Source: Chrysemys picta bellii
Lineage: Eukaryota
Direction of reading: 5' to 3'
Length of the DNA stretch: 64,000 nt
NCBI RefSeq assembly: GCF_011386835.1
Contig: NC_088813.1
Span: 13,640,001 to 13,704,000 of the forward strand
Shown here: positions 1-37,119 of the stretch, piece by piece
Position numbering within the stretch: position 1 is the stretch's first letter
Layout: every line of letters begins with the position of its first letter
Made by a program: the position numbers and the translations under genes
The notes under the pieces: model-generated
Databases searched by the model: none
What the model saw: only the letters and a program-made list of their open reading frames with translations
Told to the model about the DNA's origin: nothing

Positions 1-157
1 GGCTTGAGAGCCTGGGGGGAGGAGGCAGGCTGGGGATTTGGGGAAGGGGCGGAGTTGAGGCAGGGCCGGGGGTAGGGTAAGAAAAAAACAGGGGTGGGGG
101 GGGGGGCGGCCAAAATTGTTTTTGCTTGGGGCGGCAAAAATCCTAGAGCCGGCCCTG
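1..157. mobile_element. 3' end of a non-autonomous hAT-type DNA transposon (full copy at 19010-19515)
   Basis: Ends in TIR CCTAGAGCCGGCCCTG (142-157) followed by CTTGCACA; same element as the complete copy in repeat unit 2. Confidence 0.8.
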
Positions 158-828
158 CTTGCACAGACAGTGAGAGACGGGGGATTTGGCATGTCTAGTG
201 AGACGGACAGACAGTTTAGAGCAACTGGTGCGTTGCGATGGGTTAGAGAATCCCAGATGAAGGAGGTGTGCCTTGGCAGTGCCCTGGCATCCAGCACAGA
301 GGCTCTTTGATAAGGTGGGAAGCTGGGAGCCTGGAGTACCAGTCGCACTCGTGAGTTTTCATAGCTGGGAACCCCTTGGTAGAAAGCAGTATCTGGCGTT
401 CAGCCTTACCCCACATGGGAGTCAGTCTGGTCTATGTGAGACTGTCTGAGGCCAGCCCACTTTCTGCATAGCCCTGTGTTCGATTTCATTCCACGATACT
501 GCCCATCTCTTTCCCATCGCTAAACCTACCCAGCGCAGGACAGCTGAAATGGGCAGATCTGACTTGTCCATTGTCTGCCTTTTGTCTCAGGTGGATGGAT
601 AGTTGGAGACAGGGGGAAAAGGGCACCAAGGTGGGCTGGGGACGAGAGGATGCAGGGCAGGGGCCACGCAAACCTCTTTCCTCTTTGGCCTAAACGATAG
701 AACCTGTGCCCTGACGGGCAGGATGATCTGGGTAAGTTGCTCTGTGGGTCAGCTGGGCCAGATGTTCCCTGTGCATTACACGAGGGATTGACCTGGGTCC
801 CTCCGTTCCTTCTCCTCTCCTCCCATAG

Positions 829-32700: not shown

Positions 32701-34255
32701 GAAAGGCACCAGGGGGCGGGAGAGAGAGCGCGACCCAGGGTATGTGCTTGTTTGGATGTGTGGGTATTTAAATATTTCTTCTCCTGCCTTGAGAACCAAA
32801 TACATCCCCTCAGGCTGTGATCTCATCTGATCTTGTTAAGTAGGGTCAGGCTGGGTAAGTGCAACAGGCCATGCTCAACATAGTGACTGGTTTGAAAATG
32901 ATACTGCGGTTACGGCAGCTTCCTGGGGCAGTGAATAGGCAGTGTTCTGTGGCACGCACTGTACTCTGATAGGAGACCTCCAGTGGTAACACAGGTCCCT
33001 GTGAATGAAAGTAATACTGACCCCAGTGCCTCAGCATGGTGCTAGGGGCCCTATACCACCAGGGCGCTGTCCTCTTCTGGATGAGATGCAAAACCAAAGT
33101 AGTGACCTTCAGCTCGGACAGAACTGGGGACCTAAGAGCATGAGCCACTACAGGCCTGAGTCCCCTAGCTGGGACCTGCAGCAGAGGTCTGTCACAGTGG
33201 AATGGGCCTAAAGGGGGATATGTAATACATGCTGAACAGGGAGTTTCGTGCACTCCTGTTTCTAGCTTCCTCTTATCCCAGAGGTGGCCGCATTTCAGCA
33301 GCAGCTGGTGTGGCTCCTCATTTGGCAGGCACCTGAGAATCCTCCTGGCTGAAAAGAGCAGCTTCAGTGGAACTTGCTGCCACAGACCCACCCAGTTCCA
33401 GACCCAAAGGCAGGGACTGGGAGTGAGGCTGGGCAAAGCAGGTTGTCTGGACCCTGTTCTATCGGTCATTTGATTCTGTAATTTTTCCTAACTCCTCCTC
33501 CTGGCTCCTGTTTGCAGGCACCCCTTGCTGAGGGGGCCGTTTCTGGAGAGGTTCTGGGTGCTGTTCCCACCCTTCAGAAAAATGCTTTGTGGTGAAAAGG
33601 AAAAGAAGCCCAGTGGTTAAAGGGTGACCTGGGGGGTCAGAAGAACCAGGTTCAAAACCTGCTCTGCCGTACTACGTGTGTGACCTGGCATGAGTCCCTC
33701 TCTGACTCAGTTCCCCATCTGTTAAATGGGGATAACACTTCCCTGCCTCAGACAAGTGTGGTGAGGATAAATACCCTCAAGATTGTGAAGTGCTCAGATA
33801 AATACCTCAGGCAGATCTGATCTGGGGCAGAGGGAAATCTGGGAAGTACCGAGCATTCTTTTTCTTAGCCCCCAGGTCAGGGGTAATCCATCTTTTTTTT
33901 TTTTTTTTGTCACGGTTCAAATTTCTCTGTCTAGATACAGTGAAAGGTCCAGATTCCAGAGAAAATAATAAAAAATGATGAGAAATAAATTAAAAAGACT
34001 TTGGGGGTCTGTTTAAAAGCATCTGGCAGTCCGGCTTGGGCCCGCGGTCCGCTGATTGATTACCCCTGTTGTAGGTGATCCACATGGGAGAAGCTTCTGT
34101 TGGCACTTGAATAGCTGAAGCTGGAGAAAGGGGGTGAAAGAGGAACTTTGTCTCCTTTGTGAACAGTGTCTCCTTCTTTCAGTGCCCAGAGGTTCCCTGC
34201 TGCAGTGTGTTACTGAGCCTGCGACTGGCCCCTGCCCGGGGATCGAGTTCTCAAG

Positions 34256-37119
34256 ATGGAAGACAAGAAGAAGAAGAGGAGTCCGAAGCCTGGCTTAGCT
34301 CAGCCTGTGTCATCCAGCGCTCTGCGCAAGCTGCCCGTCCCCACCAGCAAAAGCACCACCTTCTCTCTGGGGCTGCCTCACCTGCCCTCACCAAAGCAAC
34401 GGGCCAAATTCAAAAGGTCAGTGCTGGAGGCTGCGATGATGGGGAGCCTGGGTTAGAAATGCTGCATGTCCCCAGGTATTAAACCTGAGACCGCGAGCAC
34501 CAAAAGCACACAGGCCACTCCTGCTTGAGCTACCCCGGGCTCGAGTTGTGCCCGAATGCTCGGCGATGCCGGTCAGGCACGTTTGGGGGAAGGTGAAGCA
34601 GCGTTCCAGTACAATCGCTTACTGCAAATGCTGGGAACATGCTCCGGAAATGATGTTTTTGAGGACTGGAGCTACAGCAATAGCTCCTTTTAGCTGTGAG
34701 TAGCAGGCTGCTGTACTTACAAAGAACCGGGAGCTCCTTGGAGGAAAGACAAGGCTAACAAGTTAGGAGGTAAAGCCTCCAGCCAATGTTCATGTGGGTT
34801 TGTGTTTTCTATCTAGGGTGAACAAGGAGAAATCTCGTCTGCCTCAGCCTGGGGGCAGTGGGGGCGCAGCACTGGGGGCCCCTCTGCAGCACTCCTTCCT
34901 GACCGACGTCTCGGACGTTTATGAGATGGAGGGTGGGCTGCTCAACCTGCTCAACGACTTCCACTCAGGCAAACTGCAGGCCTTTGGTAAGCAGGGGGCA
35001 ACTCCTCTAAAGGAGGGGTTCATCAGCCTGAATGGGGTCCCCAAAGCATCAATGCCTGGCCCTAGGGGTGCTGGGAGCTAGGGCCACCCAAAGCCACCAC
35101 GGCTGGCACTGGAAGATCTGGCTAATCTGGGAGGCTCCTGCTAGCTGTTGTGTGATGTCTGGGGCAGGCCCGGCCCATCTGTAATGGGAAACCCCGGGAG
35201 AGCTGGTTAGGAATCTCTACTGCAAGGGGATGTGTCTTGGTGGTTGAGTGTAACCAGGTCCCTCTCCTGGGCGGCACAGGGAAGGAGTGCTCCTTCGAGC
35301 AGCTGGAGCACGTCCGGGAAATGCAGGAGAAGCTGGCGCGCCTGCACTTCAGCCTGGATGTCTACGTGGAGGAGCTCGCTGAGGACCAGAAGAAGACGGT
35401 GGCGGATAGTAACCTAGATCAGCTGCTGACTAATGTGAGTACCAGAGAGTTCTCTCCTCATGGGCTGATCCCTGAGCCGTCCCTCGAACGCATCCCTGCT
35501 CCCTCCAAGCCTCGCACTTAGACTGTGCTGCTCTTAGTGACTAGCGCAACAGGGCCCTGACCCCCTCTGGGGGCTACCACAATACAGAACCACCAATGCC
35601 CCCTAATGGTCTTCAAAGGCAAAGTGGGGCCCTGTTCCCTTTATTGTCATAGCTGCTTGTGCTTATTCTAATGGTGGTTCTGTTTCCCTTTTCAGTTGGA
35701 AGAGCTCAGCAACTCCATGTATCCTTCTGCCGGGGCCTATGGGGGCCAGGGGATTCTTCAGGGGGCCTGTTTTGTATGTGCACAGCTGGGTGACCCCTCA
35801 GGCAGGGAAGGGAAGAGGGAATCCGCTTTGAGACACTTGATCGCCACTCTCCAATATCTCCCCAGACCATGGCATTGGATCTGAGGTGCCATTAATAGAT
35901 GCTGGTCATCTTCTGCCAGAGTCTCTAGGCAGGGAGCCCTGTAGAGCTTGGCGGCTCCTTGGGAATTGCCAGGGGTTTCAAAGACGCCAGGACTCTGCTG
36001 GTGCCAAAGGTTTCCAGGCAAGCCTGTCATGGAGACCTCTGTAGGACACCATTTTAGAGGGAGGGTTGGGTTGGAAGGAGGGGCCTGAGGGTGGGATCTG
36101 GAGGTGTGAGTAACATCTCTGAGCGGCACAAGCCGTGCTTTGCCCATCAGTGGGCAAAAGGTTAGAGGGAGCCCTAATGCACTGAGGCGGAGCGGTGATA
36201 GATGCTGGCTGGAATCCACTTCTAAGGGTAACCAGGTGCCACCAATGGAGTGAGTAATGCGCTGGGGTCTATCAAGGAGCTGGATACTGTGGGACCAGTT
36301 TGAATTGGCATGTGGTACTGGCCACTCTTGGAGACAGAATCCCAGCTGGGGTGGCTCGGTGGTCTGATCCAGTATGGGAAATCCTGCGTCACTGGCTGGG
36401 CAGGACAAGAGGGAGTGTAATCTCCTACTTCAGGGTGTCAGCGCTCTCCGTAGAGGTCAGGAAGGAACCCTTCCCCCATCTCTGCCATGCACAGACTATG
36501 GCTGGAGGGAGGAGACCAGACTTTTTATTGGACCATTGGTCTGTCCTATTGGGGCAGGGAGATGCTATATTCTATGGATCATTGGTCTGATGAGGCGGGA
36601 TACTGCATGGTACAAACCACTGCCAAATCCTACGTTCCTGTGCCGCACAAGTGGGGGTGGGGGCACTGGTGCTGGCACTGGTGCTGGAACCGGAGGGGCT
36701 ATGGAGCCATGCCCACCACTTTTTAACATGGATGGGTGGCAGAGGGCGGCGTTGCCCCTCTGAGAGGCAAACCTTAGGCAGGCACGGAACGGCCCAGCCC
36801 CTGCCAGCGCCACTCCGCGCCTGCCCAAGGCATGCAGTTTAGGGGGGCAACACTGCCCCTGGCCTCCCCAAACCTTGCCCATGTTAAAAAGTGGAGGGGC
36901 CATGGCCCCTGGGTTCTCCCGGTTCTGGTGCCGTTGCTACCGGGTACAGAGACTGGCTCAGCTGGAAGGGTTGTGTTAGGAACTCCAGCCGCTCCCCCAG
37001 GGATCTTGTCAGTGATGAGGCTGCAGCTTGATCGATTCTTCTTCTTCCTTAACATAAAACTCAGCCAAAAGCTGCATCTAGCGGAGAATCCAGACCTGGA
37101 GGACGCTGCCACTGCCTAG
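34256..37119 (+). CDS. CCDC28B: Coiled-coil domain-containing 28B, complete copy (187 aa)
   Basis: Exons 34256-34416, 34817-34986, 35280-35434, 35696-35718, 37065-37119 ([18 protein letters not shown]-stop). 564 nt, phases consistent. Confidence 0.96.
35719..37064 (+). other. U12-type (minor spliceosome) GT-AG intron, CCDC28B intron 5
   Basis: 5' site GTATCCTTC; branch box TTCCTTAAC at 37045-37053, 11 nt before the 3' end; no polypyrimidine tract between branch box and AG. Confidence 0.92.
36676..36936. mobile_element. MITE with ~55-bp imperfect TIRs inside CCDC28B intron 5
   Basis: Left ...GAGCCATGCCCACCACTTTTTAACATGG vs right CCATGTTAAAAAGTGGAGGGGCCATGG...; 12-bp tandem duplication GCACTGGTGCTG at the left end; no clear TSD. 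Confidence 0.5.

Follow-up and report, generated by a model that had tools for sequence, protein, structure and literature searches.

Does the painted turtle (Chrysemys picta bellii) carry a tandem copy of the neighbouring genes TXLNA and CCDC28B, or does its reference assembly present two alleles of a single locus one after the other? The question is raised by the first 36 kb of the window, i.e. the whole 64,000-nucleotide stretch of NC_088813.1 that was analysed, in which two closely similar units lie head to tail on either side of a short run of Ns. The apparent tandem copy was found very probably to be a false heterotype (haplotype) duplication, the real locus then holding one TXLNA and one CCDC28B. 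The arrangement is as follows:

1..16957, + strand: copy 1, at the end of the left contig; single BLAST HSP, continuing past the left window edge
16958..16967, no strand: 10-N scaffold gap of token length joining the two contigs; the only N run
16968..19365, + strand: head of the right contig, with TXLNA intron sequence and two Taxilin-domain exons (Pfam Taxilin profile, ORF reading)
19366..36282, + strand: copy 2, the right-contig segment aligned to copy 1 (BLAST alignment)
36283..37116, + strand: single-copy continuation: remainder of the final CCDC28B intron, then the last coding exon, which occurs only here (tblastn)

When the window was compared with itself by BLAST, a single HSP far beyond chance was obtained, pairing 1-16957 with 19366-36282 at 98.493% identity over 16,987 columns (bit score 29,859), with 156 mismatches and 34 gap openings (100 gap bases). 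The end-to-end alignment claimed in the preliminary description was thereby reproduced, as was its placement of the junction, for the homology stops at 16957, the last base to the left of the Ns, and the sole N run of the window (16958-16967) is sited between the copies. At the gap, copy 1 reads ...caaggagctg, followed by the Ns and then ggcaggagatgg, while the corresponding site of copy 2 continues from ...caaggagctg into gatactgtggg. The gap thus separates the members of the pair, and the homology runs to the end of the left contig; the start of the right contig pairs outside the window. The 19.3 kb given earlier for the unit stood in part: 16,957 b are aligned in the window, which is all that can be seen of the first unit since the alignment begins at window base 1, and the full length would follow from the offset between the copies (19,365 and 19,325 at the left and right ends of the alignment), the counterpart of 16968-19365 presumably lying to the left of the window. 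A search of the window for second copies of 36283-37300 and 16968-17700 returned none beyond a short MIR-like piece, so no repeat accounts for the contig ends. A protein search with a 216-aa ORF that spans the boundary at 36282 gave no hit, an outcome without weight since the collection searched seems to lack intergenic turtle ORFs.

Each copy contains the 3' portion of TXLNA together with most of CCDC28B, with the Taxilin-domain and CCDC28-domain exons all on the + strand (Pfam). The exons were searched and counted singly, not joined into a spliced protein, and were located as follows:

829..4453, + strand: TXLNA coding exons of copy 1 (829-1023, 1597-1716, 2069-2143, 2764-2856, 3481-3576, 4133-4453), from Pfam Taxilin and ORF pieces; the coordinates are those of in-frame pieces, with approximate splice ends
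~17461-17553, + strand: Taxilin-domain exon of the right contig (Pfam Taxilin profile positions 1-32)
~18619-18807, + strand: Taxilin-domain exon of the right contig (Pfam Taxilin profile positions 31-93)
20184..23786, + strand: TXLNA coding exons of copy 2 (20184-20378, 20940-21059, 21412-21486, 22107-22199, 22824-22919, 23466-23786), from Pfam and alignment mapping
11333..16391, + strand: CCDC28B of copy 1, lacking the last exon (upstream exon 11333-11449; coding 14919-15080, 15495-15671, 15959-16114, 16368-16391), from tblastn with P0004/P0126 and Pfam CCDC28
30662..37116, + strand: CCDC28B of copy 2, complete (30662-30778, 34256-34417, 34815-34991, 35279-35434, 35693-35716, 37066-37116), from tblastn and Pfam

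Copy 1 accordingly covers TXLNA from the 829 exon through the stop, the intergenic stretch, and CCDC28B through the second-to-last coding exon, the cut falling in the last coding intron. The last coding exon (37066-37116) matched residues 171-187 of the painted-turtle CCDC28B P0004 at 100% by tblastn, and no second copy of it was found in the window by tblastn and window search, in agreement with the earlier statement that CCDC28B copy 1 is missing this exon. The companion statement, that TXLNA copy 2 is missing its 5' exons, also holds: the right contig begins with approximately 490 b of sequence before its first Taxilin-domain exon, the one covering profile positions 1-32, and this TXLNA copy is therefore left without its N-terminal exon(s). 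Downstream of the last CCDC28B exon, the window contains a gene with a DCX domain (DCDC2B-like; Pfam).

The differences between the copies are informative as to their origin. Substitutions amount to 0.92%, on average about one difference per 90 b, with a transition to transversion ratio of 97:59 (1.64), and transitions at CpG sites reached 6.3% per CpG site compared to 0.36% at other sites, a 17-fold excess; indels of 12-17 b are also present. These differences are biological and not read errors. They are moreover unevenly spread, with a divergence of approximately 2% in the 0-3 kb and 12-15 kb blocks and of 0-0.7% in the part between them (dispersion index 3.5, P = 8e-11), a patchiness that recombining alleles would be expected to show. 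The longest stretch free of differences measures 1,525 b, which means that every HiFi read there is phase-informative and that two forms would stay unmerged. In the same animal, heterozygosity has been reported as 0.48% between hap1 and hap2 and as 0.55-0.71% by k-mers (PMC13077969), so that the 0.92% of mismatches is close to the 0.48-0.71% by which its two haplotypes differ, as in a haplotype duplication. The two blocks at approximately 2%, on the other hand, differ as much as painted turtle and Trachemys, for which a divergence of 1.8% has been given (PMC13077969). This is high for alleles, though regions that remain unmerged are selected for high divergence.

In the coding exons, comparison of copy with copy gave seven differences over 1,419 b, of which six were synonymous and one non-synonymous, with no indels; the four that fall in TXLNA are all synonymous. 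Neither gene's truncated copies showed a frameshift or stop. Approximately 12 non-synonymous differences would be expected under neutrality and approximately 6 if one lineage drifts. Supposing that in each gene one of the copies is a dead, truncated paralogue, the probability of at most one non-synonymous difference among seven would be 0.016-0.024, compared to 0.24-0.81 for two selected alleles. As far as seven coding differences allow, the exons of both copies thus fit purifying selection, and the relaxed constraint on truncated gene copies that would mark a real duplication was not seen. Paralogues could, however, also stay clean through gene conversion or residual function.

The history of the assembly is in keeping with an overlap between allelic contigs. 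The painted turtle RefSeq assembly, ASM1138683v2, was produced with hifiasm 0.16.1 as a primary assembly from approximately 20x HiFi reads with a mean length of about 13.9 kb, and was scaffolded by tigmint/ARCS and then 3D-DNA, using linked reads and Hi-C; no separate purging step is described, the word 'purge' being absent from the text, and the primary assembly measures 2.372 Gb compared to 2.337 and 2.329 Gb for the haplotype assemblies (PMC13077969). One of the primary characteristics listed for false duplications is a gap separating the duplicated pair within one scaffold (PMC9516828), and a duplication abutting a gap between contigs is a published hallmark of them (PMC9516828, PMC8081667). 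A possible course of events, in which the two forms would be alleles, is that the HiFi assembler kept the parental haplotypes apart in a heterozygous stretch, and that one primary contig ended at window position 16957 in one haplotype while the next, starting at 16968, took up the other haplotype approximately 19.3 kb further back, which would create an overlap. Left untrimmed, this overlap may then have been carried into the scaffold when the contigs were placed one after the other across a 10-N gap of token length, and the outcome would be the head-to-tail repeat found here, in which a truncated CCDC28B precedes a TXLNA truncated at the 5' end. The interpretation as a false haplotype duplication, which had been proposed in the preliminary description, is hence supported, not proven, by the gap position, the divergence, the mutation spectrum, the selection signal and the assembly history.

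Other origins of the repeat have to be weighed against the same observations. A real tandem segmental duplication of approximately 19 kb, whether polymorphic or fixed in this species, would have its junction within or beside the gap and would likewise place a CCDC28B without the last exon before a TXLNA without the 5' exon(s), and if a true sequence gap lay near the junction it would look identical inside the window. Two distinct and well-assembled copies, differing by 0.92% and by indels with a biological mutation spectrum, are what such an event would leave, the local divergence of approximately 2% equals the distance between two turtle genera, and assemblies also tend to break at duplicated regions. 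It is nonetheless unlikely, as the homology ends exactly where the window's only gap begins, and HiFi reads of approximately 14 kb at 20x should have resolved a junction between copies that differ every 90 b or so, so that the break has no obvious cause. The divergence also lies in the range of the animal's heterozygosity, the truncated genes lack signs of relaxed constraint (1/7 non-synonymous, no frameshift, P ~0.02), and the non-uniform divergence (P = 8e-11) would additionally need gene conversion. A young, painted-turtle-specific 19-kb tandem duplication whose partial copies were kept clean by gene conversion, possibly giving rise to a chimeric CCDC28B-TXLNA transcript, therefore appears doubtful.

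Two artefacts of another kind are less easily reconciled with the data. Homotype false duplications, in which the same haplotype is assembled twice through read errors, arise at the boundaries of contigs and span about one read (PMC8081667), and the 19.3-kb overlap, at a contig boundary, corresponds to approximately 1.4 HiFi read lengths. Yet 156 substitutions with a ts:tv of 1.64, a 17-fold excess of CpG transitions and indels of 12-17 b are unlike consensus errors in Q34 HiFi data, and this origin, which retains next to no probability, was rejected on the mutation spectrum. Alternatively, one of the contigs could be a genuine dispersed paralogue that belongs to another part of the genome and was misplaced during scaffolding, the join being indeed a token gap made by the scaffolder. 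This is very improbable, since the last CCDC28B exon and the DCX-domain gene follow downstream as in the expected neighbourhood. The conserved order at human 1p35 is KPNA6-TXLNA-CCDC28B-IQCC-DCDC2B, and both contigs would thus be at the native locus.

Compared with described systems, the locus resembles heterotype false duplications (Rhie et al. 2021, PMC8081667; Ko et al. 2022, PMC9516828; purge_dups, Guan et al., 10.1101/729962) in that near-identical tandem units lie on one scaffold with a gap only between them, the homology extends to a contig end, the divergence approximates heterozygosity and partial genes are falsely gained; a primary assembly scaffolded with linked reads and Hi-C, with no purge_dups step mentioned, is a further shared trait. 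Heterotype false duplications are defined by half depth, 1-copy k-mers and discordant linked reads, whereas the present case was judged from the assembly sequence, and its local divergence of up to 2%, high for this species, departs from the typical case. With recent tandem segmental duplications it has in common the head-to-tail order, the 98.5% identity and breakpoints in introns of two neighbouring genes, but it differs from them in that the junction is an N gap, the break falls at a contig boundary and selection shows no sign of having been relaxed.

As biology, the stretch is ordinary, and the duplication of TXLNA and CCDC28B is most likely not a real feature; were it real, a CCDC28B-TXLNA fusion arrangement would be set up. 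If a false duplication is left in the reference, a partial TXLNA and a partial CCDC28B are falsely gained, read depth and mapping quality are halved over approximately 36 kb, heterozygous variants are split into apparent paralogous differences, and wrong fusion or truncated gene models can be seeded. In practical terms, the primary assembly would gain if contig ends that overlap were purged, and claims on copy number at gap-flanked duplications of this kind should await depth checks.

The sole amino-acid difference between the copies is a proline in copy 1 that is replaced by alanine in copy 2. The proline is present in the full-length CCDC28B XP_005302239.1, annotated on an older painted turtle assembly that apparently derives from a different animal (implied in PMC13077969). 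That the older annotation holds one full-length CCDC28B with the variant of copy 1 gives a weak hint on whether both copies are present in other individuals. CCDC28B proteins were also found for Trachemys, Malaclemys, Terrapene and Emys.

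Self-BLAST of the window returned a single alignment, in which 1-16957 (copy 1) matched 19366-36282 (copy 2). It spans 16,987 columns at 98.493% identity, the copies differing by 156 mismatches and by 34 indels that amount to 100 bases in total. The only N run in the window, at 16958-16967, directly follows copy 1, and homology to copy 2 extends to the final base preceding this gap, which confirms the arrangement given in the preliminary description. The post-gap sequence (ggcaggagatgg...) is unrelated to that after copy 2 (gatactgtggg...), and a protein search with the ORF across 36282 gave no match in a collection seemingly devoid of intergenic turtle ORFs. 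Since the alignment begins at window base 1, the visible part of the first unit is 16,957 b; the alignment offset suggests a unit length of 19.3 kb, and the partner of 16968-19365 would lie to the left of the window. Gaps inserted by 3D-DNA are 500 N long, and the 10-N join therefore probably originated in the linked-read or curation step.

TXLNA and CCDC28B both lie on the + strand. Their exons, which were searched and counted singly, by reference and with no spliced model used in the searches, are as follows:

829-1023, 3481-3576 and 4133-4453, +, TXLNA exons of copy 1 (Pfam Taxilin)
1597-1716, 2069-2143 and 2764-2856, +, further TXLNA exons of copy 1
20184 onward and 23466 onward, +, TXLNA counterparts in copy 2 (Pfam Taxilin)
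~17461-17553, +, Taxilin-domain exon at the head of the right contig (profile positions 1-32)
~18619-18807, +, Taxilin-domain exon at the head of the right contig (profile positions 31-93)
11333-11449 (copy 1) and 30662-30778 (copy 2), +, upstream CCDC28B exon used in Trachemys and Emys models
14919-15080, 15495-15674 and 15959-16117, +, CCDC28B copy 1, matches to the painted-turtle protein XP_005302239.1
34256-34417, 34815-34994 and 35279-35437, +, CCDC28B copy 2, matches to the same protein
16368-16391 (copy 1) and 35693-35716 (copy 2), +, tiny CCDC28B exon (LEELSNS)

The exon matches to the painted-turtle CCDC28B protein were 98-100%. Its last 17 residues match 37066-37116 and nowhere else in the window, so that copy 1 indeed lacks the last CCDC28B exon, as previously proposed; the left contig terminates within the last coding intron. 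The claim that TXLNA copy 2 lacks its 5' exons likewise held, the missing part being only the N-terminal exon(s): Taxilin positions 1-93 are present, and the right-contig head, with its two preceding Taxilin-domain exons, is the natural upstream extension of copy 2. The first 39 residues of the ORF in the upstream CCDC28B exon are identical to those in the N-terminal extension that the 250/252-aa Trachemys/Emys models carry; as it lies ~3.5 kb 5' of the usual ATG exon, this exon either serves as an alternative first exon or is, in these species, an artefact of annotation. A MIR-like SINE fragment is found ~200 b into the right contig (~17180-17260), with weak copies at 48443-48484 and 45799-45840, and a TXLNA intron contains a 146-b near-perfect palindrome (19157-19302, 89% self-complementary), just left of where copy 2 gains its partner within the window.

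Transitions and transversions between the copies stood at 97:59, with transitions at 6.3% per CpG site compared to 0.36% for other transitions, and the indels included ones of 12, 17 and 17 b. This spectrum is germline and unlike HiFi consensus error, which speaks against a duplication created by read errors; that origin and a scaffolding misjoin are, even taken together, highly improbable. The two forms are thus real sequences, either alleles or paralogues. Their substitution divergence of 0.92% is 1.3-1.9 times the mean heterozygosity of the sequenced animal, which is 0.48% between haplotypes 1 and 2 or 0.55-0.71% by k-mers and is rated as high by the authors of the assembly (PMC13077969). 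The divergence is patchy (index of dispersion 3.5 in 500-b bins, P = 8e-11): it reaches ~2% in two blocks of copy 1, 0-3 kb and 12-15 kb, and is 0-0.7% in the sequence separating them.

The coding overlap of 1,419 bases contains seven differences and no indels, against a neutral expectation of 16.6 differences, 12.0 of them non-synonymous, calculated from the rates in non-coding sequence of this region. Six are synonymous (four in TXLNA, two in CCDC28B) and the sole non-synonymous one is a Pro/Ala difference in CCDC28B (15546 C vs 34866 G). A real tandem duplication would leave TXLNA copy 2 and CCDC28B copy 1 as truncated genes that could drift, in which case at most one non-synonymous change among seven has a probability of 0.016-0.024, compared to 0.24-0.81 for two selected alleles. 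On this test alleles are preferred at odds of roughly 10-20 to 1, though on the small number of seven differences. The Pro of copy 1 is the state in the full-length XP_005302239.1, annotated on the older assembly, so the copy-1 form exists within a complete gene; that assembly apparently derives from a different animal, as the assembly paper implies (PMC13077969). Trachemys also carries Pro, while Terrapene, Malaclemys and Emys carry Ala, a sharing across emydid turtles that reflects either a long-lived polymorphism or recurrent change.

The sequencing runs that best contain the window are three from one sample, dated 2020-2023; together with the exon matches to the painted-turtle protein, this makes it likely that the window belongs to ASM1138683v2 (SLU_Cpb5.0). 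This is a hifiasm 0.16.1 primary assembly of ~20x HiFi reads (mean ~13.9 kb, Q34-35) and Hi-C, whose scaffolding used 10x linked reads (tigmint/ARCS) and then 3D-DNA before a final curation against Bionano maps (PMC13077969). The paper's text does not mention a purging step, and the primary assembly measures 2.372 Gb vs 2.337 and 2.329 Gb for the haplotypes (PMC13077969). Purge_Dups was designed to remove heterozygous overlaps of contig ends (PMC8081667; 10.1101/729962). The longest difference-free stretch between the copies is 1,525 b, so each 14-kb HiFi read is phase-informative and the assembler would therefore hold the two forms separate. In the mechanism that we infer, ~10x per haplotype would lead to coverage breaks in each, at different points ~19 kb apart in a stretch without a long homozygous bridge, leaving the graph with two overlapping dead ends. 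One primary contig would stop in haplotype A and the next start further back in haplotype B, and linked reads connecting both ends would have the scaffolder abut them with a token gap.

A false haplotype duplication, as the preliminary description had it, is very probably the correct reading, supported, though short of proof, by the divergence spectrum, the selection test and the gap between the pair. The latter was the only one assessed of the four hallmarks of Ko et al., the others being half depth, discordant linked reads and 1-copy k-mers (PMC9516828). Within the window, a real tandem duplication would look no different if a genuine sequence gap fell close to its junction, and the ~2% divergence of the two blocks matches that between painted turtle and Trachemys (98.2% identity; PMC13077969); both points leave some weight to that reading, which is nonetheless unlikely.

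Downstream of CCDC28B, DCX (Doublecortin) domain exons on the + strand at ~48900-49416 and 55178-55426 are consistent with a DCDC2B-like gene, in line with conserved vertebrate gene order. At human 1p35 this order is KPNA6-TXLNA-CCDC28B-IQCC-DCDC2B, and we take both contigs to be placed at this conserved locus. The strongest GC-skew region of the window, also downstream of CCDC28B, harbours a G-rich minisatellite at 39740-40274 (self-matches to ~40450), with ~12 copies of a 45/46-b unit at 90% match. Finally, long open frames on both strands span a proline-rich, C-rich repeat region at 53317-54306, including a 63-b tandem repeat at 53930-54060, which may be coding low-complexity sequence or merely repeat.
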